This document shows positions 2,330 through 64,000 of a DNA stretch of 64,000 bases, in pieces (position 1 is the stretch's first letter; the number at the start of each line of letters is the position of its first letter). The notes beneath the pieces were generated by a model that saw nothing but the letters and a program-made list of their open reading frames with translations, had not been told where the DNA came from and did no database searches. Origin of the DNA: Pelomyxa schiedti (taxonomy: Eukaryota > Protista > Evosea); the NCBI GenBank assembly GCA_020536535.1, contig JAHLWZ010000682.1:1-64000 (forward strand). Reading direction: 5' to 3'. Made by a program: the position numbers and the translations under genes.

Positions 2330-5300
2330 TTAACTTTTCTTTTTATCTGTACTGCTGTGCGTGCAGCTGGTCACCTTCGAGGAAGGAGCAAGAGGTATGG
2401 TATGGCTAGCAAGGCTTCCTTCCAAGTGCAGCTCGAGACGGGTGCAGCGGGCAACAATATCCTTTACAGTGGCCATGATACGAGATCTAGCATCGGAAGC
2501 AGGAGCAGTACCGGGCAGTAAAAGGGGGCCCAGCGTCAGGTGTGTCAAGGAAAGAAGGTGTCTGGAAATGGCAGTAACACCAGCATGGCTAACGTTTTTC
2601 AGGTGAAGCGTTGAGAGTCCGGCGCAGTGGGTTGCCAAGGCCGAAGCATCTTCGTTCGAGAGACTATGAGACAGAGTGAGAGATGTGAGTGATGGGCACC
2701 AAGGAGCTATTGATGATACATCCGCAGTGGAAGAGGCACCCAAGTGAAGGGAAGTGAGTGTGGTGCACGGTTGGCATCCGAGGAGAGGGAGTGGGCTGGG
2801 GAGGCGAGGCGATTTTAGGCCCTTCAGGTGGTTGACTTCCAGATGCCTGAGTTTCTTGAAGCACGACGCAGCTCCACAAAAACTATTCACACTCATCTCA
2901 CTGCAGTGCAAATCGGCGAGAGCTGTGCATGACTTGGCAATGGCAACAATGCCAATAAGAGGGCACCTTGCGCAGGTGAGGTGAGTGAGGGAAGGAAATG
3001 AATAAGCAATGGTAACGCAGGTGTGATTCGAGTCCTTCTTGGTTGCCTTGCGGAAAGGAACTTTTAGGATTGTGACTCCACTGAAGAACTGAGAAATAAG
3101 TTCCGCAGTGGGTGTTTCTTTTGTGAAAGGTAGGATGTGAGGGATGATGCTATCTATGAGGTCATTTTGTGAGTAGAGTTTACACAACTCATTCAACACG
3201 CAAGCTTGCCGATTCTTGAACGCCTCACTTGCTGCCTCGAGTGCCAGCTCCTTTTTCAGTGTGCTTTCTTCAACCTGCGCGAGCATATGGCAAACGGCTT
3301 TGTGATTGCCCATCCTTGCCGGTATTCCAATCGAAACACCACCAGCTTTCTTCTTAGCGAGCCAGTCAATGACACGCTGCTGACCAGAAACGTGGGCTTC
3401 CACCGAAGCCTGTTCCAAGTCACCAGCAGTATAATTAATCAAGAACTTGAGCATCACGAGGTTGCCGTGTTGGGCAGCAGGCTCTGTGAGCAAGCGACAT
3501 ATGCAAGGTGCAATTTGCAAGGCCAAAAAGTTTGGCATCACGCGAGAAGCCTGCCACCCAACTGGTCTGATGCTCTTAAGGAATTTGTTAGTTGCATCAT
3601 CACCAAGCAGTGTCACTGCTTCAACAACAGCATCCAATCCAAGTTGAACACGCCACTTGTCACGTGTTGGGTAAGATGCGTCCCGAGACAAATCTTGCTC
3701 TATCTCTGGCTTGTTGGCCCTATAGTTGGAGTTGAACACTGTTAGCAGGGATCTAATGAATGTTTTTTTGATGCTTCTGTACAGAGGTGAATTGACGGAA
3801 TCGTGGATGAGGCCCGAAATGAACAGAACGAGGTTGCGCTCCCTTGGTGACCACTTGAAGGTTTTTTGTGACATTTTATCACTGAAGATTCCGTCCAGCA
3901 GTGCAGCGGCATTGGGTGCATTCCTTTTGCTGCAGATATGCCAAGCTGTGAAGAATTCTTCCAAAGTCTTGTGGAGGAACCGGAACCCATGGACATTAAT
4001 ACTCATATCCTTACAGCTGCACCGCTTTACCAACCCACAGCAAGAAGTGAGACTTTCAATTTGTTTGTGCATGTCCAGGTGAAAAGTTCCAGTCACGTCG
4101 TCAGCCGCGGTGCTTATAGTTGCGTTATAGGCCCTTTCCCTGAGAAGACGATTGGCAATTTTTGTGTTTTGGTGCCACGCAGCATCGGTATTGCGCAGCT
4201 TGCTTTTTGCACGGTCCCAGGCGTACCGGACAAGAAGTTTGAAGATTGTTGTCACGCTGGGGTTTGTGTCACCTTGCAGTTTGCTGTAAACAGTGCAAAG
4301 AATTTCACAGAGAAGTGGTGTTCCAGCCATCCTGCTGCGTACTGGGTTATCTGAAATAAATTTACAAACTCTATTCACACAAGCTTGTCGTTCGTCCGCA
4401 CTGTTTCCAAATTCTTGGACGTAGTTGGAATATTTTGTGATGTAGGTATTAATCTCTGCTGAGGTCCACTGTTGAACAACAGCTACGGCAGCACCAGTGA
4501 ATATTTGGTGTCGACGGTCGTGTCTTGATGTGACAATAACACAGGGTGCCCAATCTAGCTTATTGTGGACAAGATCGGACAGAAAACTCTCCCATTTCTC
4601 AGTGTCTACTTCTTCAAACCCATCAAAGACCCACAGGATAACCCTTGAGTGCGCAAAGATGTCCTTTATCATAATGTCATCAAGCATGAGAACACGTAGC
4701 AAATAGTCTTCAACACAGTCACGTAGATTCACAGGGCCGGGGTGCAGATGTGTTGCAATTCTGCAGAGCTCCCGCAATTCCACAACAATAATGGCTCCAA
4801 ATTGCAGCTTCATCTCAGCCGTTCCTTGTTCACGTGCCAGGAATTTAACCAGAGTGCTTTTCCCTGAGCCCGGGTCACCTTCCACAACACACCGTGTATT
4901 CCCAGTTCTTAGAATAGTACTCCACAGCCGATCCATTCCAAAGGTCTGTCCGAGATAACCATACCTATTGGCAATGGCCATCTGCAGGGAAGTGTAAAGC
5001 TCCGCAAATGGTGGGGGGTTTTCCATGTGGTCCAAGTGGTCCAGAAGAGACATGCGTTCGTACAGAACAGAGTAACGTATTGGCAGCGTTTGGCGCACAT
5101 TTTCTCCCAGAGGGTTTTGCCGAGAATTCAAGGCATTTGGGATTGCAACAGAGCGTTTTGCGTGTTCCAATCTCGTGATGAACCACCGCAATCGCGCCGA
5201 TTCGGACACAACGGCGTTGAACACTGACTGCACGATCCCCTCGACGTGTCGGGGTTCATACTGCAAGTTTGCAGTGGAACTCTGCGTGTGGCACAAGAAA

Positions 5301-6574
5301 TAGGCAATTGCGGGCTGCCCAGTTCTTTCAGGACGAAAAAACCGGCATCTCTCCTGAGGTCCAAATGGCTTGGAGAGCAGGTGCCTATCTTCTTCGCAAA
5401 TGCTTATGTGACCAGCTTTAACTGCAACTGCAAGTTGCTCAGTGCCTTGGGCATCCTCTGAGGAATCCATTACAAGAACAACATCAACACCACGACCATG
5501 GAGTGCCGGAAGAGGAACATTGAAGTCAATGCCCGCGTCTCGAAGGTTCCCAATACCCTCTTCAAACGCAGTTTTGCCGAACATTTCCCGTCTTTTCCGC
5601 CCGGTTTCTGGGATTGTGAACACGGATGGATGCAACCACTGGAGTATCATCGGCATTTCTGAATGCCAACCCCTCCAGTCCACTGCGAAGAAACTGCCCC
5701 AGACAGCCATCAAATGTGGAAGGGTGTCATCACTGAGGTTTTCAGTTGCCTTCACAGCGGTACCGCCTTTCCTCACCGTGAACGGCGTGAAATCAACCCA
5801 ATCCCAGCTGTCTTGTTCGTTTTCACTTATGGCAGTGCACACCGGAATTGGAAACGACCCGTCAGCAAGCCGATTCTTGCACTGGCTGAACCTCGCCGCC
5901 TCCAGGTGACGGCCACTCAGCACAACCTTCGACATGAACCGTTCCCATCCAGCCATCAGACTTAACTTTCTTGTTATGTAGGATCCCAGCAGGCACCCCG
6001 CCCCTGCAGGGGAGTATTGGCTCAGCATATTCTTGAGCTCTGAATGTGTGTGCCTCGCGGAATCAAACGGGGGCCCACCGGCCCGCCACGGATCGTTTTC
6101 ACGCGTGCCACCGTGGAATGGGTTGCCTTCCGTGTCACACACCCACTGGCTGAGGCACCATGTGCTTCCAGAGAGACCAACGGCGAAAGTAACGGCGTCC
6201 AGCAGGCCGATGTGGCTGAGGCCGTCCATGAACCCAACCATGCTCTGCAAGGCCCTCATCCCACCACCAGACCCGCATATCGCAATCACAAGTGGTTCTG
6301 CTTCCACTTGGTGTATGCCACCGCTCCCTGTTACGCAGGTAGTACTTGCACAACTGGCAGTTGGTTTTGGGGATGACGTTGAGCTTGTTGGTCCTGAGGT
6401 TCGCCCGGCTGTCATTGGCGCGTCCTTTTTCGAGCGGAAGAGTTACAATGAAGCAACGCAAATGAATTCACGTACCCGGTGCAGGAATTTATCGAGGGCT
6501 ACACTAGCCACTCGTTTCCGTGCGTTGATTGCTACACCTTCTTCAGAAACTCTCGAGTTAAGCAGTGCACTCAT
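2330..6574 (-). CDS. NLR-like STAND protein A: cPLA2/lysophospholipase catalytic domain - NACHT - ankyrin-like - LRR
   Basis: 1361-aa ORF plus an upstream exon 6574-6476 (intron 6475-6425, GTACGT...AAAG, phase 0). cPLA2 motifs: ICGSGGGMRA, GLSGSTW, LRDAGIDFNVP. NACHT motifs: GDPGSGKST, LWVFDGFEE, VIVTSR, GTPLLC, FLHKTLEEFFTA. Ankyrin-like AAQHGNLVMLKFL. LRRs such as LTSLTLSHSLSNEDASALATHCAGLSTLHL. Confidence 0.88.
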
Positions 6575-6785
6575 GAGGTCGGCCTCTAGTTGTTAAAATT
6601 TTTTATTTTTCTCTTTATCTTTTTGTGCACCTGGACAGAAGAAGTTAACAGCCAAACAAAATTTTAGTACAAATAGTAATTCCCGTAAACATCTGAGAGG
6701 GTTCATTGCCAATCAAAACCGGTATTTTTTTTTCCTCTTTGCCGAAAAACCTAGCCGTCAGGGATGCGTAAGAACTGAGGAAGTT

Positions 6786-9700
6786 TTACAGATGAAAGAC
6801 TTGCACACAACAGGAAGGACGAAAGGCGCGAACACGAGCGACTGCGTGCTGCAGACTCGGTCCCAGATTCATCCTGCAGATAGCGGAACAGCGTTGAGCA
6901 ACGGGGGCCAGGTCGATGTTGTCTCCAGGTGTTTCTTCCCGCAGAGTAAGATGTGTCAAGGAATGTAGGTGGTTGGCAATCGCGGTGACACCGTCCCTGG
7001 TGATTCTCACAATGAAGAGAGTGGTGAGTCCGGGGCAGTTCTGTGCCAAGGCCGAGGCACCAGTGTCTGTGAGACTATGATACAAAGTGAGAGATGTCAG
7101 TGCCGGGCACCAAGGAGCTATGGAGGACACATCCACAGTGGAAGTAGCACCCAAGCAAAGAGATGTGAGTGTAGTGAACGGGGGAGAGGATTCTCGGTCT
7201 TCTGAAGACCGCCTGCCCTTCAGGTGGTGGACTTCCAGATGCCTGAGTGCCCTGAAGAATTGAGCTGTAGCACAAAAACTATTCACGCTCATCTCACTGC
7301 AGTGCAAATCGGCGAGAGCTGTGCATGACTTGGCAATGGCAACGATGCCAATACGAGGGCACCTTGCGCAGGTGAGGTGAGTGAGGGAAGGAAATGAATA
7401 AGCAATGGTAACGCAGGTGTCATTCGAGTCCTTCTTGGTTTCCTCGCTGGAAGGAACTTTTAGGATTGTGACTCCACTGAAGAACTGAGAAATAAGTTCC
7501 GCAGTGTATGTTTCTGTTGGACCGGAGCCTTCATTGAAAGGTAGGATGTGAGGGATGATGCTGTCTACGAGGTCATTTGGTGAGTAGAGTTTACACAACT
7601 CTCTCAACACACAAGCTTGCCGATTCTTGAACGCCTCACTTGCTGCCTCGAGTGCCAGCTCCTTTTTCTTTTCAATACCTTCAACCTCCGCAAGCATTTG
7701 GCAAACGGCTTTGTGATTGCCCATCCTTGCCGGTATTCCAACCGACACACCACCGGCTTTCATGGAAGTGAGCCAGTCAATGGTACTACGCTGACCAGAA
7801 AGGTGAGCCTCCATCATAGCCTGATCCATTTCACCACCAGCATAATTAACTAAACGCTTGAGCATTGTCAGGTTGCCATATTGGGCAGCAGGCTCTGTGA
7901 GGAGGCGATATATCCAAGGGGCTATTTTCAAGGTCAAAAAGTTTGGCATCACGCGAGAAGCCTGCCACCCATATGGTCTGATGCTCTTCAGGAAGCGCTC
8001 AGTTGCATCATCACCAAGGAGTGTAACTGCTGCAACAACAGCATCCAATCCAAGTTGAACACGCCACTTGTCACGTGTTGGATGAGATGCATCGCGAGAT
8101 AGATCCGCACTAAGCTCTTTATAGTTGGTGTTATAATTAGAGTTAAACACTGTAAACAATAAGCCAATGAAGGGTTCTTGGATTTGCTTGATATAGTGCT
8201 TCCTGGAACTGTGGATGAAACTGGCAATAAACAAAACGAGATTGCGCTCCTTCGGCGACCACTTTGTGCCTTTTGGTATCGTTTTATCAGTGAAGATTCC
8301 TTCAAGCAGCTCTATGGCATTGGGTGCATTCTTTTTGCTGCAGATATGCCAGGCTGTGAAGAATTCTTCCAAAGTCTTGTGAATGAACCGGAACCCATGG
8401 ATATGAGGACCACCATCCTCAAGACTGCACCGCTTGACTAACCCGCAGAAAGATGCACGCCTCTCAATTGGCTTGTTCATGTCCAAGTGAAAAAGTCCAG
8501 CCAAGTCGTTGGCCACAGTGCTAACAGTTGAATTATAGGCCCTTTCCCGTAGAACACAAATGGATTCCTTTATTTCATTGGACCAGGTGTGGTCTTCAGT
8601 AATGCCGAGCTTGTTTTTTGCACGGTCCCACGCATAACTGACAAGGTGTTTGAAGATTGTTGTAACACTACTTGTATCACTTCGCATTTTGCTGTAAACA
8701 GTGCAAATTATTTCGCAGAGAAGTGGTGTTTTGGCCATTCTTGCGAGTTCAGGATTGTCTGAAATAAATTTAGACACGCTGGGAGGCAGTAACGCTCGTG
8801 ATTCGGCGGTGAGGCCAAATTCATTGACGTAGTCAAAGTATCTTTTGATGTAGGTGCTAATCTCTGCAGGGTTCCACTGTTGTACAATAACTGTAGTTGT
8901 GTCACTGAATATCTGGTGTCGGCGGTCATGTCTTGCTGTGACCATAACGCAGGGTGCCCATTCTAACTTGTTGAGGACAAGCTTTCCCAGAAAGCTCTCC
9001 CATTTCTCAGTATCTACTTCGTCAAACCCATCAAAGACCCACAGAATGTCCTTCGAGTGTGCAAAGATAAGTTTTATCATGTCGTCATCAAGCATGAGAA
9101 CACGTAGCAAATAGTCTTCAACACAGTCACGTAGATTCACAGGCTGAAAACTGTGCGGATGTGTTGCAATACTGCAGAGCTCCCGCAATTCCACAACAAT
9201 AATGGCTCCAAATTGCTGTTCCATCTCAACCGTTCCTTGTTCACGTGCCAGGAATTTGACCAGAGTGCTTTTCCCTGAGCCCGGGTCACCTTCCACAACA
9301 CATCGCGTGCGACCTGCGAGAAGAACAGCGCTCCACAAACGCCCTACTCCAACAGCTTTTCCAAGGCCACCATACCTACTGGAACCGGCCACCTGCAGAG
9401 AAGTGTAAAGAACAGAAAATGGTGGATGTGCCATGTGGCCCAAGTGGTCCAGCAGTGCCATATACTCGTATAACTCGCAGTAACGTTGCTTCAACACTGG
9501 ACGCACAATATCTCTCAGAGGACTTTGCCTGGGACAGCATGGTATGAGAGGTGTCACAGGAACAGAGCCTTTGGCCTGTTCTACTTTTCGAATGAACCAT
9601 CTTAGTGTCTCAGATTCAGAAATAACAGCATTGTAGACTGACTGCACAATCCCATCAACTTCTTGTGGTTCGTACTGCAAGTTTGCAGTGGAACTCTGTG

Positions 9701-11476
9701 TGCTGGCCAAGAAATACGCAATTGCGGGCTGCCCTGTTCTTTCAGGACGGAAAAACCGGCATCTCTCCTGAGGTCCAAATGGAGTGGAGAGCAGGCGTTT
9801 ATCTTCTTCGCAGATGCTGATGTGACCAGCTTTTACCGCAAGTGCAAGTTCCTCAGTTCCCTTGGCATCAGCTGTGGAATCCATTACAAGAACAACATCA
9901 ACACCACGACCATGGAGTGCCGGAAGAGGAACATTGAAATCAATGCCTGCGTCTCGAAGGTTCCCAATACTCCCTTCGGTTGCTGCGGCACAGAAAATAG
10001 GTTTTCTTTTCCGCCCGGTTTCTGGAACTGCAGAAAATAGTGGAAACCAGCCGAGAATTGTAGGAATTTTTGAGTGCCAGCTCTTCCAATCGATAGCAAA
10101 GAAACTGCCCCATACGGCCATCAAATGTGGAAGGGTGTCATCACTGAGGTTTTCAGTTGCCTTCAAAGGGGTTCCACACTTCCTCACCGTGAACGGTGTG
10201 AAATCAACCCAATCCCAGCTGTCTTGCTTGTTTTCGCTGATGGCAGTGCACACCGGAATAGGAAATGATCCGTCAGCAAGCCGATTCTTGCATTGGCTGA
10301 ACCTTGTGGCTTCCATGTGACGGCCGCTCAACACGACATCCGACATGAACTGTGACCATCCATCCACCAAATTCCCTTTGCTTGTCATGCATCTCACCAA
10401 CTTTGCCCCAACAGCCGTAATTGAGTGCTGGCTCAGCATCTTCTTGAGTTCTGAATGTGTGTGCCTCGCGGAGTCAAAGGAGGGCCCGCCTGATCTCCAT
10501 GGGTCGTCTTCGCACTTGCCACCGTGGAATGGGTTGCCTTCCGTGTCACACACCCACTGGCTGAGGCACCACGTGCTTCCAGAGAGACCAACTGCTAAAG
10601 TAACGGCATCCAGCAGGCCGATGTGGCTGAGGCCGTCCATGAACCCAACCATGCTCTGCATTGCCCTCATTCCACCACCAGACCCACATATCGCAATCAC
10701 AAGTGGTTCTGCTTCCACTCTCTTCGCTCCTCCTCGTTCTGTACACGTGCTCGTTGTACACGCTGGTGATGAAGTTGATTGTGATTCTGATTTCGAGCTT
10801 GATGCAGAAGCCGATGCTATCAGTGATGCTGATGTTGTTGAGGAGGTAAATTTGGCTGAAGTGCACTGGAGGAAAGGCTTATGTGCTCTCCCTTCACTTC
10901 GCAAAGCTGTTTGTTGTTCTTCATTGGGGTGAAATTGGGAGAAATTTGTGTGGGTACAAACCTTGAGGTGTTTTGACTGGGGCTTTTCCTTTGTCATACC
11001 ACCGTTGCAATCTCAAAGCTACTCAGAATTTTAGACAAAAAAAAATACGAGAAATGCAAGTAACAGTAGGAAGGACCTAGCTACCTTCCTGCAGCTTTCG
11101 TCGATGTTGCTCAGCGGCCTCCTCTTCACTAGTCTTGGGACGAGAGTCCTCATCGCTACTGCTACTGCTGCTATCATCGCTATCATCACTCTCTCGTTTC
11201 TCACTAGATGTGTGTTTCGTAGGCCCAGAAAAGCTGCCATTGGTGCTGGTTTTTAGTGTCAGGGGGTCTGACACCTGCTGAAAGTGAAAAAAAAAAAAAA
11301 GTAAGAGCAACAACGTGTCTTTGTCACCAAATAAAAACAACAATTGAAGGCACCTTTCCTGGATCCTTTTGCAGGAACTTTTCAAGGGCCACTCTGGCGA
11401 CGATTTTCCTTGCCTTGATTGCATTATCCTCCTCTACTATTGCGTTTTTCAGTGTGGTGCTGCTTGTTTTGTTCAT
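6786..11476 (-). CDS. NLR-like STAND protein B, tandem paralog of A: cPLA2 - NACHT - ankyrin-like - LRR
   Basis: Carries the same motifs as A, with a canonical Walker B (VFDGFDE). Manual model: exons 11476-11354, 11277-11085, 11018-10962 and 10906-6786, joined by GT-AG introns in consistent phase. Confidence 0.88.
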
Positions 11477-11605
11477 CGCACCATCGTTTTCTTCTACTTG
11501 TTACAAAAAAAAACCGAACAACAAAGTTTTTTTGTTTTGAAAACTCAAAAAGGAAGGAGAACAATTACACATTGTCCCCAAATGCAAACAACTAAAGGGG
11601 TGCTC

Positions 11606-16779: not shown

Positions 16780-19700
16780 CTACAATCTAGTTTGTTTTGT
16801 GTGCTGGTAAAGTGAGGGGCATTGAGGTCTGAGGGGTGGTGGTGTTGGCAGAGAAACCTGTTGCTGTGACTGGTGTGTGGTGGTGGGTGATAGTGGAAAC
16901 CTGGGTATCTGGGTTACAGAGGTGGGTGGAAGAGCTGCGGGGAGTGGCTGGAAGGACCTGTGGGGAGGAGGAAGGGTGCTGGGCCGTGATTGGAGTTGCA
17001 CCGGAGCGCCGACCGATTGCATGGGCAGTGCTCCTGGTGGCGGGAGCGGCAGTGACATGGCTGGCTTGTTGCACTGGAGAGGTGGGAGCTGTTGTTGCTG
17101 TGGTTGTTGTGGTTGTTGTGGTGGTGGCGGCGGCGGCAGTACCTGTCCGCGTTCGTGCGTGGATGCGGGTGTTGTGTGTGTGCGTGCTTGTGTGGGTGAT
17201 GAGTACGGGGGCAGGAGGCTGGGGTGGGGGAGCGGAAATGTGGGGGGGCCAGAGCCTACGACGGGGACTTGGACGGGCGTATTTGCTGGGCCGCTGTTAC
17301 GGAACTGCGGCGGCGGCTGGGGCAATGGGGAAGGAGGTTGTTGCGGAACAACGGGAGGAGTTGGCTCCGCCAGGGCGCGGAAGGGGGGGGTACCCGGGGG
17401 CTGTAGTGAGCTGAGGAGTGGTGGTGCTGGTGCTGACTGGAACAACTGGGGATTGGGGATACCCTGCTTAATGGTCTGTACTGCAGGAGGCGGGGGTAGG
17501 ATGGATGTGAACGTGTTGGTTAGCGGGAATTGGCCGTTCTGCTGTCGGGCATGCACTGCAGGGGGGAGTACCGATTGTGAAACTGCTGTTGCTGTCTGAC
17601 GAGTTGGGGGATATTGCACTGGTGACAGTCGAGGCAGAACCGGACTGGAAACTGGCTTGTCGGCTGCTGGGCCTGGCATCTTACTTCCTTGGTGTGGAAG
17701 TGGAAGTGAAAGTAGAGGCGACTCACTGCATTGCAGTGGTATATGCTTAACCTCTTCAGATACACTCTCATGTGCTTTCATAATCTGTTCGTAGAGGACT
17801 TCGGATCTGTGTACAGTATTTGCCAGAGGTTCCAATAACTCATCTAATACTTGTAAATCAGTCTGTAAATCCCTGAGTTCAGTTCGTTCATTAAGTGCGA
17901 CACGTTCGAGAATTCTCTGCCATTGCTGTTGCCACTTCTGTTGCTTGTCCTCCGCACTTCTTTTAATTGTATTGAACTCGTCAATACATTGTCTCAGTGT
18001 AGAAGTTTTTTGTTGAATTATTGCCTGCCTAGCTGCACTTCCACATATGAGATTTTGTAGGTTCACAACTGTGGTGCTGAGTGTGCGAGAGCTATTTTCT
18101 AATTTTTCAACAAGAGTACTATATTGCACTGATTTCTTGTTTAGTTCACTACGGGTATCCTGTGTATTAAACCCTCTTCCAGGGTGAACTTGGACTGGGG
18201 TTGCATCAAGAGTGGCCGAGTCACTGCAGAAGGAAGCATGCACTTCAACCTGTGTTATGAAAGAAATCAGACAACTTTTTTAAAGTACTTGTACATCCAT
18301 ACTTCTTCCTGGGGAATGAGCTGCCCACACAAAGGGCACTCTACCTGCCTGATATCGAGTTTAGCTATTTGTAGCTACGGAGAAATGAAACATACAGGGA
18401 ATGATCTAAGGGTACGGCATTAGATGCTGCAACAGGCAGAAGGGACTCTGGTTCATTTTGCCGTGATAGCTGTGGTCTGAGGAAACTGGGTTGTGTCTGA
18501 TGTAAAGGGAGAGGTGGGTGCGGCTTTGCCGGCTCAGCAGCGAGGAGACTGGGGGCTGTGACTTGCACTTCGGACTCAGTTGGTGCTTTATGCTTGGGCA
18601 AGTTAGGTGCCCATATTTCAGCTAACTTCTTCATTAGGGTACTAGTTTCATATGTCTGTAGATAACGTCTCGTTTTTTGTGAAATATCTTTTATTTTCTT
18701 TCTGTTACTCAGGTCAAGGGGAAATTCATCGAGGTCTAACATCGGATTAAACCGGAAATAAGAAGTACTTGAATTGTTAAATCTCCGACTCATTTCTCGG
18801 TGTACATTTTCAGAGTCACTGACAATAGCAACAATATCTTTCACCAATACTGAGCCTATCCAATGATTTTGAGGTACTCCGCCTATATTGGTTGGCAGTT
18901 TTCCAGTACCAATGGATACGAGAGCGTGGAGTGTTGCCTGTGGCCACAGGAAAGAGGCTTCAGCTTCTGCTTCATTCGCTGGATTATTGGCACCAACCCC
19001 ACCATCTATGTACTGCACCCCACCAATAAGTTTTGGAGAAAAATAAGACGGAGCTGCTGACGTGGCTAATGCACCGTCGAGAAGAGTGAGGTCACCAGGC
19101 GGAGAGGAGCGTGACTGAGCAGTGTCAGGCCTTTGATAGCTGCGAAAAAGGACAGTCTCTGGTCGACCTTGTCCAATACGAGTGGATGTTACACAAACCT
19201 TCGGGAATGTTGAGGAGCATTGAGACCAGGTTCTATGTGGTGGAACCATGGTAAGAAGTAAGTTTTGCAACATTGAACTAGAATAACATCCCCCTGTTGT
19301 TGCCCAGTTGACAAACTTCTTGTACCAGCTTGATCCAAAGAGTCTAGGACCAAGTTCCATGTAAAATGAATGCAGTATATGCAAATCAATTTTTAGTAAG
19401 CCTAGTGCAATGGCCAGGATCCCTCCTGTACTTGTTCCACAAATAAGGGTGAAGATATCCCATATCTTCTTGCCCGTCCTACGTTCTAACTCCATCAATA
19501 CCTCAATCTCAACTAGTCCCCGTATACCACCTCCATCAAGGCAAAGTATATTATACTTTGACTCAGGCAAGACAAGAGAAAGTTGTCGTGCAATTTCTTC
19601 CAATGAGTCTATGACAGTTTCCATTTCTGGCCTTCTGGGTGGCTCCTGGTGGCTCATTTCATGCAAGAGTTTGTAGTATCTACTATGCGGTTCGGATCCC

Positions 19701-22698
19701 GGGGAGTAGACAGTTTGCCCGAGCTCCTCTATTGCTATACAGGCTTTCCCTAAGCTATAGAAGTCTACTCTATAGTCACTTGTGTTGCTGGAAAGTTCTG
19801 GGGCGGCGTACAATGCTGCGTCATTTGAAGGATTAAATGAACATTGAAAGTAGTTAAAGAACGCCTCCCCACTTGCGTTGATAAAAACGTTGTCCGGAAC
19901 GAATATTTTGAGAGTGATTCCGTGCCTGTGAAGAAATGTAATAACATTACACAATGTGATAACTTGCTGGACACGAGTGAGGCAATGGTACGGTAACTGT
20001 TTGGATTGCGCACGAAATGATTGCCACGTGTGGGCAACTGCAGGAAAAACCAGGGAAATATGGGTCATACCATCAGAAATCCTGAGGTACTGCAACGGGA
20101 GGATGGACCCATGATTAAGTGCCCATTGAGTCATTATTATCTTGTGTATTTCGGCAGTTTGATCCTTGGAAGTGTGGGTCAAATCTACATTTGTCACAGT
20201 GACGGTAGATGTGACTGGTTGTAATGGTGAGAGGAGGTAATCTTTAAGTACTCCTCTGGTCCCATCAGGTCCCACTTCCAGTACTTGGGGTTGTAATTCA
20301 TAATGCAGAGAAAGAAGACATACGCCTGTTCCTAAAAGTTTTTCTTCACTCCAAGTAGTACTTTCTTGTCTAGCACTCTTGCATTCACAAAGAAAGCTAA
20401 TTTGGGCTCTCAATTCATTGATATAGTTGTCACAAAAAGATTTCATCGTCTCTTTCATTTTGAGTTTCAGTTTGGGCACAACATCTTTGACAATTTTCAG
20501 AGTTGTGTCACGAGAAATTACAGCCATAGTCATATTTGGAATCATAAGTGGCTCATAGTGTACTTGTGGTACTTGCGAGAGAAGCGCTCTATAAGATGAT
20601 AGAACTAGTCGCACCTTTACGTTCCAGGGATTATTACCATCAATTCCAGAACCAGCGTATATACCAAGTTTAGTAAACGAGAAGTCAGTAGATAGAGCCG
20701 CAAGTTGATGGTGAGTATTAAATATTCCCTCACACTGCTTTTCAAAGAGTGCAACAACGTCTCGTGAAAAAGAGTGGAAGCGGTCTTGGGTTAGCATCGT
20801 TGTCACTTTTAAACGTATCCGGGAGCGTCGCATTAAATGTGTTTCGTTCTCCAGACAATTTTGTGAGTCATTGAGCAGTTCATGCTCTATTTCATCCACC
20901 TGATCAAAGAATTTGCAGTCTGGTTGCTCCAGGTAATCAATGAACGAGGCGACATGTGACTCAATGATCCTGTCCATCATTTCAAGAGTACCATTAAAAG
21001 AAATTCTCAGGTCAGTTTCAGATCTCAGTAAGTTAGCCTTAATGGTAGCAACGTTTTCGACAAGGGAGTTTATTGATAATAGAGATCTGGTCACTTCGAG
21101 AAGAGAAGCAACTGTAGCACACACTGAGCGCTTGAACAAATATTTGAGCCAAGAAACGAGCTTGATATGAAATTGGAAAATTGCCTTCGGCGCTTTGATT
21201 ATTGAAGGTTCTCCCTGGGACAAGTTGAATGCTTCCAGTGCAGAATACGGGGCGAATCGATCAAATTTAATGCTATCTGTATGTTCGGTAACCCCCCCCC
21301 CGGCGCCATCCACTATGCTCTTCACCCAATCAAAGAATGTTTCCACTGGTGAAACGTCCCCAGGGACACGCCTTATCAGGTCGAGCTGGTTCCCAACAAA
21401 GAATATTGTTGAGATGTCCAATTTGGTCTGGTTAATTATGTCAATCAAAAATGATTTCTGACGGAGTCTCCCGGCAGGGTTCTTCAAGCTGGAGAAAAAA
21501 TTATTCCCAATCGACCTCTTTGGCGTTCAACCCACTCTTCCACAACTTTACGTAGTTTCTCTTCTTCTTCCAATCCAGGGGAGTCAATAAGCTGTACACC
21601 GGCCTCTAAGAGAGGGTGCGGCCACTTGACTTGTATTTGCTTCTTCAAGAAATAGTCTAGAATATCACCTTTGCTATCCCGTCCAAAGACTGGTAGAAGA
21701 GAGGCACCTTGGAGGGTCACAGTTGGTACTGCCGAGAGCGGCTTCCATTCTTGCCACCTTATCATTCCCTGGTGATCTGGGTCTCCGATTCTATAACAGG
21801 GCTCAGCGCCATAACTGATGGTCGTCATGCACACGGTACAGCAGGAGTCCCAAGCGGGTAACAGAGGAGCCTCAATAAGAGAGTTGATGAACATACTCTT
21901 CCCAGATTTTGTCACACGAGTGACAAGAAGAGTGACATTTTCTAACGAAGTAGGCAAACTTTTAGATGTATCCTTAGCATCCAAATACCTCATAAGAGTG
22001 GTCCTTAACCCAGAGTTTTGATAAGATGTCGCATGCAGCTTCAGAATCTGTGTGAGTTGCCCAGATAATCTCTTCACCTCCTTTTCGCTTGCTACTGATG
22101 CCACCCCCCCCGGAGCTCCTTGAAAACTTGAAAAGATTTCTTGGCCACTTCGGACCTCGCAAATCCCAGCATCACTCTCACCACCGCCGAATGGGTTCCG
22201 AAATCTCGCTCGAATTTCGTAGGGACGGGCGCGGCCGCGGCGGTGCCACCGGAGCTACCGGATGCGACTGCCGGAGTCGCCTCGTCAGTTTCATCCTCGT
22301 CAAGACCTGCGAACTGCTCCAGGGTCGAGAAAGACTGAGCGACTCTGGCCGCCGCACTGCACACAGTTCCTTGGTCATACCCCCGAGTACGACACGCCGA
22401 CGGTGCTGGAAAGCCATTGTGGGATGGCCATCGTCGCCAGGTCGGCAACAACGCTCCTCAGGGCCACTACGTCCCTTGCGTTTATACGGCACTCATGCTG
22501 GGTTCCAGGTGTCTGCAGTGCTGAAAAAAATGGCTCCAGCCGGCCACCTTGCTGTTGGTAGACCTGAAGAATGCCTCCAATCTGCGGGGCCGAAAAACCA
22601 AGCTCCGTGAGTCTCTGACAAAGTTGCTGCTCTGACATCAATCGTGTTGCGTCGGACGCAACTTGCGTCTTTTGGTTTCCAAAAAAAGGAAACCGCAA
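16780..22698 (-). CDS. Multidomain protein: UBA-like - degenerate dynamin-like GTPase - helical region - pseudokinase - patatin (PNPLA8-like) - UBZ-type Zn finger - coiled coil - Pro/Gln tail
   Basis: ORF pieces 22698-22375, 22451-22092, 22104-21484, 21487-18365 and 18243-16780. GTPase motifs VTKSGKSMFINSLI, IDSPGL, FFVGNQLD. Kinase-fold remnants YAAPE, VDFYSLG, PPRRP. Patatin motifs DGGGIRG, GTSTGG, DGG. Two GTATG-donor introns near 18395-18190 give CPLCGQLIPQEEVEVHASFC. The 5' junctions are unresolved. Confidence 0.75.
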
Positions 22699-30645: not shown

Positions 30646-32480
30646 TCACAGAGCCACGTTGTCAAAGATGAAGAAGTCGAACTCCGAAGAGGGCTGCCGG
30701 TCGACGACGAGGAGCTGGTTTGTTGACGAGATCCACGATGTCAGCAGCACGCAGGTGCCGGAAGTCGGGAGTGTGTTTCTGTAAGTGCCATCATAAACAC
30801 CAGTCGCGGTGTCATACACCCCATTGATCTTCCTGCTGTTGTGTGCCTTTCCAAAGTAGAACTTCCCACACACAACAAATGCAAAGCCTGTCTTCCTCTT
30901 GACGCGTGGCACCACCCACGTCTGCAAGATCGCGAGGGAGTCGGGGTCCACCCTCGTGATGTGTGTGTTGCCGTTGTTGGGTGGTGCGTGCACCACAAAC
31001 AGCACACCCCCAGCGTCGACATGCCAGCAAATATCCGTGTACCCACCCCAGCTCCACGACGATTGGTTTGCGACGCCGGCGTTGGGGAGTGGTGCAGTTG
31101 CCACTGTCGATCCATCACTCACACGCACCTTGGTCATGGTGGCGGCGTCGCGAGGGTTGCAGTACACGTGGCCGTTGTGCACTGCCTGGCAGGTGCCGCC
31201 GGGGCTGCCGGGCAAGTCCTTGAGTGTGAATTGTCTTGGGTTGGTGTTGCTGATGAAGCTGGTCATGCTTTCGAATTCTGAGAGTTCCTTACGATTGTAG
31301 TTGGAATCCCAGTACACTTTCCCGGTTGCGTTGTCGACAAACACCCTGAGTGCCTGGCGAGGTGTGATGGAGGGCACCATCGACGTGCCAAGCTGTTTGA
31401 GCGTCCTCGCCGTCGTTGTTGCGGGTGTTGTTGCCTTTGTTGTCACTGACGTCAGTGAACTCGATGCTGAATTGTGAACAAGTTTTCCCAGCGAAGAGAC
31501 TGCACCACAAACAGCAGCTGATTCGCACTCAAGGCTCACCTTTGGGTTGTTGTCATCAGACACGGTTTTTTTGGGGATATATATATATATATATGGGATG
31601 AACAGTTTTAAAGAATTTCATTGCCAAACATGCCTTCAGTTTCTGTGGAGTTGCAAGATCATCACGGGATTTGCATACACTCTCAATCTGTGCTGTGAGT
31701 GCTTGATTCACTGAAACAACCTCGACATCGGAGAACAGTGTCGTTGCTTGATGTGCATATTCCTGTGCCTCTTGTGCGATCTTCAACCTCCGATCGCATC
31801 CCTCGATGTGCTCTTGGAACGTCTTCAAAGTTGTTTTTTTTTGGTTTTTTTTTTTTTTTTTGGTGTCAGTGAAATTGAGAAAAAGGGCAACTCTTGCCTT
31901 GTTGGCGGCTTCGTTGATTGTTTTCAGTTCAGAGAGCAATTGTGCCTCTCTGGCATTGACAGCACCAACGATCTTGGCAAATTCAGATCTTATTTCTGCC
32001 CCGATTTTATCTGTGGCTGCTTGTGCATTTTTGCGACACTCCTTTTTGTTTTTTTTTGGTTTTAATACCGATATCGTTTACTTGAACAGGATTGATTGGG
32101 CTTCGCACAATTGCCGTGATTTTGGAATTTGTGACTTGCTCCAAGTGCGACGCCAAATTGGAACAGGTCGAGGCAATCTTCTCCTTGAACTTGGAGCTCA
32201 GGTCGGTGACAAAAACCAAGTCGTGGTTCTTGTGCTCAATCAGCCTGATGATAAATTTTGGTTTTTTTTCAAAAAGATCGAAAGAGAGNNNNNNNNNNNN
32301 NNNNNNNNNNNNNNNNNNNNNNNNNNNNNNNNNNNNNNNNNNNNNNNNNNNNNNNNNNNNNNNNNNNNNNNNNNNNNNNNNNNNNNNNCATGAAGTGTGG
32401 CCACTTTCTTCTCTGGCATTTTTTCGCTTCTCCTGACCTTCCTTATTCCTTGCATAGATTTTCTCCAGACGCTTGGCGGT
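30646..32480 (-). CDS. B-box/coiled-coil protein with a C-terminal olfactomedin (OLF) domain; the 5' part is interrupted by the N-gap
   Basis: OLF motifs GTCQAVHNGHVY, LPNAG..WSWGGYTDI..VDAGG, ITRVDPDSLAILQTW, FAFVVCG. Upstream exons give a B-box end (EHKNHDLVFV) and a TRIM-like coiled coil (IRSEFAKIVGAVNAREAQLLSEL). Confidence 0.72.
32289..32388. other. Assembly gap (100 N)
   Basis: A run of exactly 100 N, a scaffold placeholder. Confidence 1.
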
Positions 32481-61004: not shown

Positions 61005-64000
61005 ATGTTCGAATGGTTGGTGAGTGACATTTTACTCCGTTTTGTTGGCGATTACGTGAGGCACTTGAACGCTGATCAACTGCGTCTAGATGTCTTATCT
61101 GGTGCGCCTTCCTTCGTGCCCTTTTTTTTTTTTTCCCCTACTTCTCCCCAATTGCACTAGGTCTTGTTGTGCTCAAGGACTTGGAGTTAAAGGCAGATGC
61201 ACTGGCGAAGTTTTCTGACTTGCCTGTTTTTGTGAAACAAGGTTTCTTCGTGGGCTTGTTCTTGTCTTATCTTTTTAGGCTACTTGAAGTCACTTGAACT
61301 AAAACTCCCATGGAAGAGTCTTGGGTCTCAACCTGTCGAAATTAAGATTGATGGTGTTTACCTTGTTGTAGAAAGGGTTAAAGCAACAACCACGACATCT
61401 CCTCAATTTGATTTGGAATCTCTTCATTCCCTTAAAATGAAGAGATTGGCAGCTTATGAAGAAGCTCGCAGCAAACGGACAAATAAACCAAGTTACTTGA
61501 TTACCCCATTTGTCCTCTCTGAACAAGTTCAGGTGTTGAACCTTCAAAACAGTCAGGTAGCACCTTTGGTCAAAGAATTTTGGCAAAAGTGTTGGCAAAC
61601 CTTCAAATCACTCTCACCAATATTCACGTGAGGTACTGTCTTTCCCTGTTGAAGGCTTCGATTTTCACTTTCTACTTTCCTTCAGATATGAAGACACTAA
61701 TGAGCGAGGGGAGTCTTTTGCGATTGGAGTAGCCATTCGTGCAGTGAGAGCTGGTAAGCCCTCACCCTCTCCTTTGTAAGAATAACCTCAGCCAGAATCA
61801 ACCAACTCAAACTGGGAGCCTTGCTTTATCAATACTGATACCCAACTGGATCTTATTTTCAATGTTTGGCTTCATTACTATTCAATAATTTCACCTCTAA
61901 AAGATGGTTACAATTGATAGTTTCTCTGTCTACTGGGACACAGGCTGTACCCATATTGATTCAGATATTAACCTTTTTTCAGAACAGATGACGGCCTTGG
62001 TGATTACTATTTGTTGTTTCAGCATTTACTAACTGCTATTCAGATACCCCCATGCAGTTATCCACATTCATTCATTCTAGAGCCTATATCAGGAAAAATG
62101 AAACTCACTGTGAATAATGCTCAATCTGTGTCAACAACTGCTCCAACACCTAAATACACTGCCAGTATCAATTTCGACAATATATCCATTGAGCTCCACC
62201 ACCAGCAATATGTCAATGGCCTAGAATTGGCCAATACTTTTCACGCACAACGAAAGGCCTTCATAAAGGTTAGGTGCCTACTATCTGTTGATTTGCCCAT
62301 TAAACTCTTGACAGCAACGGAAAGGCAGACCAAGTGTTGAAGTTCATGGGAATGCCAAACTTTGGTGGAAATATGTGCTGAATCGTGTTACAGAAGATGT
62401 TAGGAAACACAAAACATTTAATTGGAGGTTTCTGTCACATAGAAAAGAGCTGAGGTTGAAATATGTGGCACTGTACACCAAAATCATGGATTCTCAGGTA
62501 GCAGAAAAGTTATCAAAAATAATTCTTAGTCTTTACATGGGCTTCACATACAGGCAACTGCTGAAGACAAGCTTGCCCTTGATGCACTAGATAGAGAATT
62601 AAGCTTTGAAGATATCATTTTCTTTCGCTCTCTTGCAACAATTCAGTTGAAGCCAAAACCCACCCCAGAACCCACTGCAGCACCCCAACCACAACCAACG
62701 GCAGTTCAACAACGTGGATGGGTATCCTGGCTGACAATGGGCATGTGGGGAGCTCCTCAAGTCCAAACTACACCACATTTATCTTCAACTACAACAGCCC
62801 CAACACCGACAGCAGCTACCCCACAAAGAATTCTCAATGCAGAGCAACGTCTGGAATTACTAGAAATTTTTGGCTATGATGCAGTTAAGCATGACTTCAT
62901 GCAGGATGGTGCACCCCCAATGCACATACGCATATTTTTTGAACTTGGGGCACTTCATATAGATTTGCGCGGGAAAACCAATACAAAAGTTGCCGAGTTT
63001 TGTGTCCAGCGTACTACTGTTCAGTGGAATTCCACCCCTTCCCACTTTGATGTTAAGGCCACTGTTGGAGGAATTTCTGTGGATGACCTACAAGCTGCAA
63101 ATAGGGGAGAACTGTTTCCCAGAGTTGTGTCTGTTCGCCAGTTGCCACCAACAGCATGCCCGACAAGGGAAATCACTGGTTTACCAGACCAAACCTCTCC
63201 ACAAGCCATGTTTGAATTTTCATTGGAGAACAGGCCTCCTGAAAGTGATGCTGATTATGTTCTTTCGATGCGTTTGCTCCCACTGGAAGTGATAGTGTCA
63301 CCTTCAACTATTCATCGGGTAGGTAGTGGCACAAAATGCAGCACATCTAATTTGACCATTTGGCAGGTGTGCTCTTTCTTTTATGTTCCCAAGAATGTCC
63401 ATATCGATACTGTGACTGGTGGAGTAAATGAGTGGTTATCACAAAAAACTACAGTGAACTGGCGTGAAGCACTGGAGAACCACATTAAAGTTCGGCCCCT
63501 CACTGCTCCCCCTTTTTTCATGCAGTCTTTCTCAATAATTGACAGGTTGACATGGATGTAGATTTACATGCCCCAGTGTTGATTATTCCACAAAATAACA
63601 CTGCAGGCACACCTCTACTAATCTTGGACCTTGGTAGACTTCGTATAAAGGTGTGGCCTAGATAGTGTGCAACTAATAAATTTTTGTAGAGCGAACTTGG
63701 CTCAAAAAGTGAACCCTTGGAACACTTAGAGACAACTGCATATGACCACTACAACCTCCAAGCCTCTGATATACACACGTTGCTCATGTATTCGTCTGAT
63801 GGAGACTGGCGTAACCAAGTTTCTGCCAATGCCTTTCCTCTCATCCCACCCTTCGCCATCAACCTCAGATTGAGCCAATTTGTTCTGGATACCAACGAAA
63901 CCCATTATAAACTGAAAGCCGCCGGTTCAATTCCTGACTTGCATGTGAAGCTATCTGGGGAAATTGTTCAAATAGTGAAGAATATTTTGGAAAGCTCTGC
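61005..64000 (+). CDS. VPS13: VPS13-family lipid transfer protein, 5' part (runs off the window)
   Basis: Chorein-N motifs MFEWLVSDILLRFVGDYV, LKDLELKADAL, LPVFVKQG|YLKSLELKLPWKSLGSQPVEIKIDGVYLVV. Later WWKYVL and DLHAPVLIIP..LDLGRL-like segments. Confidence 0.9.

Follow-up and report, generated by a model that had tools for sequence, protein, structure and literature searches.

The 64,000-nucleotide (nt) stretch of DNA analysed here, positions 1 to 64,000 of contig JAHLWZ010000682.1 read on the forward strand (hereafter the window), comes from the genome of Pelomyxa schiedti, a free-living anaerobic amoeba of the Archamoebae and a phagotrophic protist. Close to its start lie two long genes in tandem on the minus strand, termed gene A and gene B, with open reading frames (ORFs) of 1361 amino acids (aa; 2330..6415) and 1403 aa (6786..10997), respectively. 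The two proteins are 72% identical over 1286 aa and the DNA is 78% identical; a tblastn search with the family found no third copy in the window. Both genes encode, in the same order, a lipase of the cytosolic phospholipase A2 (cPLA2) type, a NACHT domain followed by a winged-helix and helical module, a block of about four ankyrin repeats of divergent sequence and some nine leucine-rich repeats (LRRs) of the Cys type. Sequence comparison and structural modelling together place genes A and B as tandem paralogues in an Archamoebae family of predicted STAND receptors of the NLR (NOD-like receptor) type. A preliminary description, made from the letters of the window alone, had proposed such a pair of paralogues in a phagotrophic protist, with a full cPLA2 catalytic set rather than a patatin-type lipase, a NACHT domain complete from Walker A to the winged-helix motif, an ankyrin-like block and LRRs; each of these elements was recovered in the analyses that follow. 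In a search of 5.8 billion proteins the gene B frame was returned at 100% identity as 'cytosolic phospholipase A2 [Pelomyxa schiedti]'. The public NCBI annotation names both genes only 'cytosolic phospholipase A2', which mis-describes them.

The gene models and domain positions are collected in Table 1. Spliced gene A (6574..6476 joined to 6424..2330) is exactly the NCBI model P0002. The candidate first exon of gene B codes for the conserved helix with which the lipase domain starts in the family members P0003, P0004 and P0005. The NCBI model of gene B, P0001, instead uses other small 5' exons (window 10866-11190) and is without the conserved N-terminal helix of 11354-11476, and its 5' end is probably misannotated. 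Joining the candidate exon to the main ORF of gene B by hand, via GT-AG sites, gave no convincing in-frame join.

Table 1. Positions of the gene parts, domains and key residues of genes A and B in the window
Feature	Position	Strand	Basis
Gene A main exon with stop (lipase, NACHT, ankyrin-like block, LRR; unbroken)	2330..6424	-	ORF; agrees with NCBI model P0002 (1397 aa)
Gene A intron, 51 nt, GTACGT...AAAAAG	6425..6475	-	Removal reproduces the P0002 N-terminus exactly
Gene A exon 1, 33 codons; conserved helix before first lipase strand	6476..6574	-	Homologous to N-termini of P0003, P0004 and P0005
Gene A cPLA2-type (PLA2_B) lipase; Arg 6254-6256, Ser 6170-6172, Asp 5537-5539	5156..6304	-	Pfam PLA2_B, 27.7 bits
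Gene A NACHT core; Walker A Lys 4859-4861, Walker B Asp 4622-4624, sensor-1 Arg 4523-4525	4430..4894	-	Pfam NACHT, 44.6 bits
Gene A divergent ankyrin block, about 4 repeats	3104..3526	-	Family alignment and its profile search
Gene A C-terminal Cys-type LRRs	2426..3007	-	Start: AYSFPSLTHL motif; end: alignment to gene B
Gene B main ORF, 1403 codons including stop	6786..10997	-	ORF; NCBI P0001 100% identical over 97%
Gene B candidate exon 1, 41 codons, ATG at 11476, GT next	11354..11476	-	Homologous to exon 1 of gene A and P0003
Gene B cPLA2-type lipase; Arg 10665-10667, Ser 10581-10583, Asp 9951-9953	9570..10715	-	Pfam PLA2_B, 32.1 bits
Gene B NACHT core; Walker A Lys 9270-9272, Walker B Asp 9030-9032, sensor-1 Arg 8931-8933	8835..9305	-	Pfam NACHT, 51.1 bits
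Gene B divergent ankyrin block	7500..7937	-	AF2 helix hairpins; profile search
Gene B C-terminal LRRs, about 9 strand-helix units, F-box/RI-like type	6864..7466	-	AF2 model, FBXL17 match, Foldseek
Winged-helix His	Gene A 3971-3973; gene B 8379-8381	-	Motif FRF(I/L)HKT

Two artefactual origins of the architecture were considered and rejected. A merger of two genes does not agree with frames that are open over 1361 and 1403 codons, with an RNA-library contig (8910-9692) that spans the lipase-NACHT junction, or with the identical fusion in other species. A viral or contaminant source of the window is opposed by the spliceosomal intron of gene A, by a VPS13-type frame typical of eukaryotes, and by the presence of Pelomyxa and Mastigella copies in one clade.

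The N-terminal domain passed the curated Pfam cut-off for PLA2_B (PF01735; 23 bits) in both genes, with a match that runs in one stretch over profile positions 1-185 of 491 only. Neither gene gave a match to Pfam Patatin up to an expect value (E) of 0.1, or a Pfam match to a C2 domain. Translation of both copies revealed the complete set of catalytic motifs: the Arg of GSGGGMR, the Ser of GLSGS and the Asp of RDAG. By sequence the lipase matched human cPLA2-alpha (1CJY) at E 2.5e-11 and also cPLA2-delta, and the three gene B residues align with Arg200, Ser228 and Asp549 of human cPLA2-alpha. The oxyanion and Ser/Asp set is kept across the family and across 41 PLA2_B sequences. An AlphaFold (AF2) model of the gene B lipase, computed from a 41-sequence input, had a mean predicted local distance difference test score (pLDDT) of 83.7, with the core fold above 90. 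When this model was compared with the PDB by Foldseek, cPLA2 delta and alpha (5IZ5, 1CJY) were the top matches (E 5e-18 to 1e-17; template-modelling score by query 0.55), and PlpD, VipD, CapE, patatin, ExoU and CapV followed at E 2e-5 or worse. The cap between the aligned lipase blocks comprises about 70 residues against about 185 in cPLA2-alpha, and part of it is modelled at low confidence; three long helices are modelled as the linker from lipase to NACHT. Taken together, sequence and model indicate that the N-terminal domain is a Ser/Asp lipase of the cPLA2 type with a much shortened cap and without C2. Because the C2 domain is lacking, some other membrane-targeting device would be needed, such as an oligomer or the repeats.

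The NACHT domain likewise exceeded its curated Pfam cut-off (26.7 bits) in both genes. Both copies contain a Walker A motif (GSGKS), a Walker B motif (VFDGF(D/E)E), the sensor-1 Arg, the TPLLCE motif and the winged-helix His, which by analogy would contact ADP. Searched against the PDB with phmmer, the NACHT part gave marginal matches to NLRC4 and NOD2 only (E 0.2-0.8), so its membership in the NACHT family was assigned from the Pfam profile and the motifs. Its language-model neighbours are animal NACHT clusters, and there is no large language-model cluster that joins PLA2_B and NACHT. The closest NACHT relatives outside the family include the amoebozoan Dracoamoeba and a starfish.

The ankyrin block was recognised by a family profile. 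None of the Pfam ankyrin models reached its cut-off, the best being Ank_2 at 21 bits against 27.3; Ank_2 recurred as a sub-threshold match in six of seven family members, and Atlas features pointed weakly toward ankyrin clusters (score 0.84). A profile built from the block in 16 members, however, matched Ankyrin-1/2 (E 2.8e-10), Kidins220 (1e-7) and DARPins (1e-5) in the PDB, and among the 60 matches listed almost all were natural or designed ankyrin-repeat proteins. On the strength of this search the block was taken to be a divergent form of the ankyrin domain, with about four repeats. In the AF2 model of the C-terminal third (pLDDT 84.5), paired helices with a period of about 30 residues are followed by nine strand-helix LRR units. 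The top Foldseek match of this model was autoinhibited NLRC4 (E 3e-8), followed by NLRP2/3/9, NAIP and NOD2 and further on by the F-box-type LRR proteins COI1, TIR1 and FBXL; no ankyrin protein occurred among the best 50 matches. Pfam LRR_4 stayed under threshold in genes A and B, though the gene B LRRs matched those of FBXL17 by sequence at E 3e-6, and LRR_6 exceeded its cut-off in paralogues. From sequence and model, therefore, C-terminal LRRs are predicted, and with them the pairing of NACHT and LRR that characterises an NLR in the strict sense.

Genes A and B are each intact and show purifying selection. The pairwise ratio of non-synonymous to synonymous substitution (dN/dS) between genes A and B was 0.37 overall, 0.23 in the lipase, 0.35 in NACHT, 0.42 in the LRRs and 0.65 in the ankyrin block. 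The dS of the ankyrin block was unusually low at 0.22, which hints at gene conversion. RNA contigs from two single-cell libraries of one study match both genes. On gene B they cover 6767-9692, without splice joints and including the contig across the lipase-NACHT junction, and on gene A they form two short pieces, 5700-5826 and 6148-6298. Essentially no contigs from these two libraries fall in the 468-nt intergenic gap or in 9693-11569. This pattern fits the 3'-biased cDNA of a single long transcript and speaks against stray DNA.

Two further observations were made in gene B. A contig in both RNA libraries matches window 8052-8178 (or 8020-8178) exactly and then continues into unlike sequence, whose 30 letters are the same in the two libraries; it is probably the transcript of a paralogue that shares this stretch. 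At window position 9750, a G>A difference was present at about 43% of depth (109.5 of 253.3) in DNA run X1, and may be an allele or a collapsed paralogue.

To place the two genes in a family, an exhaustive HMMER scan was made of 1.84 billion representative proteins (50%-identity clusters). Nineteen matches below 1e-30 were obtained, and about 20 representatives span both the lipase and NACHT. Pelomyxa schiedti itself has at least six members (P0001-P0004, P0010 and P0011) on five contigs, the tandem pair included. One transcript comes from Mastigella eilhardi (P0009) and two more from EukProt (P0005 and P0006), and the remaining members are metagenome proteins apart from P0014, a transcript filed under the prokinetoplastid Papus ankaliazontas that may come from prey or a contaminant. 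Sixteen members that are 22-32% identical to P0001 were aligned. The Ser, Asp and Asn of the lipase catalytic site do not vary among them, and every sequence in which the oxyanion segment is present retains its Arg. Invariant too are the Walker A Gly and Lys (G572, G574, K575), the first Walker B Asp (D655), the sensor-1 Arg (R688) and the Pro and Cys of helical domain 1 (P757, C764), while the winged-helix His (H872) is nearly so. Among deep paralogues the lipase is the best conserved domain, at 44-47% identity against 27-32% for NACHT. Between gene B and P0003 the LRRs are 49% identical and the other domains 66-79%.

A tree of 138 PLA2_B domains placed every NACHT-fused lipase in one clade with support of 100. 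This clade also holds about 20 others, including proteins of about 1000 aa from Bodo saltans, and 98 conventional PLA2_B proteins, an animal cPLA2 among them, stand apart from it. Nine Archamoebae sequences form a clade with support of 99, within which P0010 of Pelomyxa pairs with P0009 of Mastigella; because of this pair the family is taken to be older than the split between the two genera. One paralogue, P0004, ends in a SKICH domain (residues 1612-1692; 26.1 bits against a Pfam cut-off of 23.4). SKICH is known from the autophagy adaptors NDP52, which acts in xenophagy, and TAX1BP1. In another, P0003, residues ~95-175 are a partial duplicate of the lipase start, with a second ...CGSGGG upstream of the real one, and the two are divided by a Ser/Thr-rich linker that is also present in gene B.

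Outside eukaryotes, a scan of 185,579 bacterial and archaeal species genomes with a single Walker-B pattern, which was not exhaustive, found no PLA2-plus-NACHT fusion; its matches cover the NACHT part only (residues 543-932). No relative of the family was found among IMG/VR viral contigs with P0028, P0017 or the family alignment as queries. P0028 (JGI contig Ga0606305_0018, 90 kb) and P0017 (ENA) themselves lie on metagenomic contigs dense in ORFans, on which the recognisable genes encode SET, Pkinase, ANK, HNH_2, T5orf172/MUG113, DUF5710 and GIY-YIG with a zinc knuckle. Both contigs have the look of a giant virus or of some other large element. In ORF scans, a homologue search and an Atlas look-up (score 0.65), no virus hallmark gene was found in about 60 kb of the 90-kb P0028 contig.

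The amoeba proteins were compared with four groups of known systems. With animal NLRs (NLRC4, NAIP, NLRP3 and NOD2) they share NACHT with its Walker A, a DGFDE-type Walker B, the sensor-1 Arg, a TPL-x-C motif and the winged-helix His, and also a helical module followed by C-terminal LRRs, the half whose best fold match is autoinhibited NLRC4. They differ from animal NLRs in that the N-terminus is a cPLA2-type enzyme and not a CARD, PYD or BIR adaptor, in that an ankyrin block stands between the helical module and the LRRs, and in their amoebozoan host; moreover, sequence similarity to solved NLRs is marginal (E 0.2). Animal group IV cPLA2 (alpha and delta; 1CJY, 5IXC) resembles the amoeba lipases in its aligned catalytic Arg, Ser and Asp, in being the best fold match and in belonging to Pfam PLA2_B, whereas the amoeba lipases are without the Ca2+-dependent C2 domain, have a cap or lid of about one third the size and form a separate, well-supported PLA2_B clade. 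CapV and CapE of the bacterial cyclic-oligonucleotide-based antiphage signalling systems (CBASS) are also lipases of the patatin/cPLA2 superfamily, serve as immune effectors and appear in the titles of PDB entries as ligand-bound filaments. Unlike the amoeba proteins, however, they are separate, small and activated by cyclic nucleotides, without STAND fusion, and the similarity in fold is distant (E 2e-4 to 1e-2).

The closest parallel in architecture lies in fungi. As described in two surveys, fungal NLRs may carry an N-terminal Patatin domain (PF01734), mostly on NB-ARC and with ANK, TPR or WD repeats but without LRRs (PMC4986451, PMC12258605). The authors infer a role of these lipase NLRs in cell death or the response to non-self (Dyrka et al. 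2014, PMC4986451; Sordariales survey, PMC12258605), and one fungal Patatin NLR is given as the product of an incompatibility gene (PMC4986451). The amoeba proteins resemble them in that a STAND NTPase, followed by C-terminal repeats, is preceded by a lipase from the same fold superfamily, and differ in that the lipase is PLA2_B (PF01735) with cPLA2 as its best fold match and sits on NACHT with ANK plus LRR. The preliminary description knew of no PLA2_B domain in an effector position, and the papers searched agree: in term searches of the fungal-NLR catalogues PLA2_B was absent and only Patatin-type lipases were found (PMC4986451, PMC9815663, PMC12258605). A full-text literature search for PLA2_B together with NACHT returned only an unrelated snake-venom paper, nothing relevant was found in the literature searched on NACHT in Archamoebae or Amoebozoa, and the word NACHT is absent from the P. 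schiedti genome paper (PMC8887013). The claim that the system was undescribed holds in part: no description of the cPLA2-NACHT-ANK-LRR combination was found in the literature searched, but the proteins themselves are public in NCBI and the family extends beyond this locus and this species. What appears new is the different lipase family, the composite ANK-plus-LRR arm and a host lineage without prior discussion of NACHT-LRR proteins.

These features suggest how the protein may work. The N-terminal lipase would be the output and NACHT an ADP/ATP switch, which the C-terminal repeats would hold shut and also connect to a trigger by binding it. At rest the protein would be a monomer with bound ADP, the ANK-LRR arm folded onto NACHT as in NLRC4 and the lipase off; such an ADP-locked state is proposed because it agrees with the likeness of the helical-LRR half to NLRC4 and with the conservation of the winged-helix His. 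A microbial or danger ligand on the repeats would then lead to nucleotide exchange and to oligomerisation of NACHT, and the clustered lipase domains would hydrolyse phospholipids at an adjacent membrane. That oligomerisation could activate the lipase is proposed by analogy to the oligomeric, ligand-bound forms of CapV and CapE. The outcome might be damage to the invader's compartment or vacuole, regulated death of the amoeba, or lyso-lipid signalling. The preliminary description had likewise proposed ligand gating, with membrane lysis or lipid signalling switched on by oligomerisation and possibly directed at endosymbionts or giant viruses, and the anatomy would be consistent with such a role.

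On balance, the family members are probably receptors of the NLR type that serve defence or cell death through an active lipase effector, though this reading is by no means a firm one; the leaning is toward cell-autonomous defence. Several points weigh against it. Lipase activity, oligomerisation and ligand are predictions, and the pairwise dN/dS below 1 in every domain gives no sign of an arms race. The family, with six genes, is small next to typical expanded NLR repertoires. Non-immune NACHT proteins exist, and a suicide-type defence seems less obviously adaptive for a free-living single cell. The RNA evidence, moreover, consists of assembled contigs from two single cells, is 3'-biased and leaves the 5' third and 5' exon of gene B uncovered.

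Some of the same observations would suit a housekeeping lipase regulated by nucleotide, in which NACHT, ankyrin repeats and LRRs act as a scaffold or switch that places the enzyme on particular membranes for phagosome or vacuole remodelling or for lipid signalling, without sensing of non-self. Purifying selection in all domains, the modest number of paralogues and an origin before the Pelomyxa/Mastigella split count in its favour, and a lipase without C2 needs another targeting device. The domain order and motifs, however, are those of signalling NLRs, and the helical-plus-LRR half is nearest to autoinhibited NLRC4. Close paralogues differ strongly in their LRRs but have the enzyme conserved, and the patchy distribution among eukaryotes would be unusual for a core trafficking enzyme, so that a housekeeping role is judged unlikely. 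An inactive lipase, which would serve as a lipid-binding sensor or a dead scaffold while partners recruited to the oligomer give the output, could be argued from the partial Pfam match (a single stretch over the first 185 or so of the 491 positions in the profile) and from the short cap with its low model confidence. Against this, the catalytic Ser, Asp and Asn do not vary and the oxyanion SGGG-R motif is retained by nearly all members in sequences that are only 22-32% identical to P0001, and the lipase has the lowest dN/dS of all domains together with a core fold at pLDDT above 90; a lipase without activity is therefore regarded as very improbable.

Self/non-self recognition or control of symbionts, in place of defence against pathogens, is a further alternative. 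Pelomyxa species are multinucleate and contain endosymbionts, and the receptor might police cell fusion in the multinucleate amoeba or cull its prokaryotic endosymbionts, a task for which a lipase output would be suited to attack on symbiont membranes. The data do not separate this role from the sensing of pathogens, and close relatives occur in organisms of other lifestyle (the Papus transcriptome). Even with the precedent of the fungal Patatin NLR encoded by an incompatibility gene (PMC4986451), this role is held to be improbable.

If the NLR-type receptor is accepted, the family bears on the history of NLRs and of immune lipases. It connects three cases of lipases in immunity, namely the fungal patatin NLRs, bacterial CapV/CapE and animal cPLA2, and it offers a simple, testable model of a STAND switch that gates a lipase. 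NLRs that combine NACHT and LRR are usually regarded as an animal invention with adaptor-domain outputs. Here an amoebozoan has the full NACHT-helical-LRR chassis, with NLRC4 as its best structural match, joined to an enzyme that could act on membranes by itself, and this provides a data point on when the NACHT-LRR combination arose. A bolder proposal, which appears rather doubtful at present, is that the proteins belong to a pre-metazoan NACHT-LRR immune lineage of Amorphea, which would carry out defence directly: NLR oligomers induced by a ligand would arrange their cPLA2 domains in a ring, and this would digest the membrane around the invader's compartment or the cell's own. Were it true, the family would be a eukaryotic counterpart to the filament-activated CBASS lipases, and its relatives on ORFan-dense, possibly giant-virus-like contigs would be captured copies that serve as decoys or weapons.

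Elsewhere in the window, a Patatin domain (E 3.9e-24) was found in a frame of 1040 aa at 18365-21487 on the minus strand, about 7 kb from the 5' exon of gene B, so that two different lipase-bearing giant proteins are encoded in one neighbourhood. An olfactomedin (OLF) frame lies at 30646-31563 on the minus strand (E 1e-28), and a VPS13 N-terminal-like frame at 62647-63561 on the plus strand matched at E 8.5e-10, under the Pfam cut-off. The segment 12856-14127 has a G+C content of 64% against about 46% across the window, and contains long overlapping frames on both strands (419 aa on the minus and 285 aa on the plus strand) without a Pfam match.

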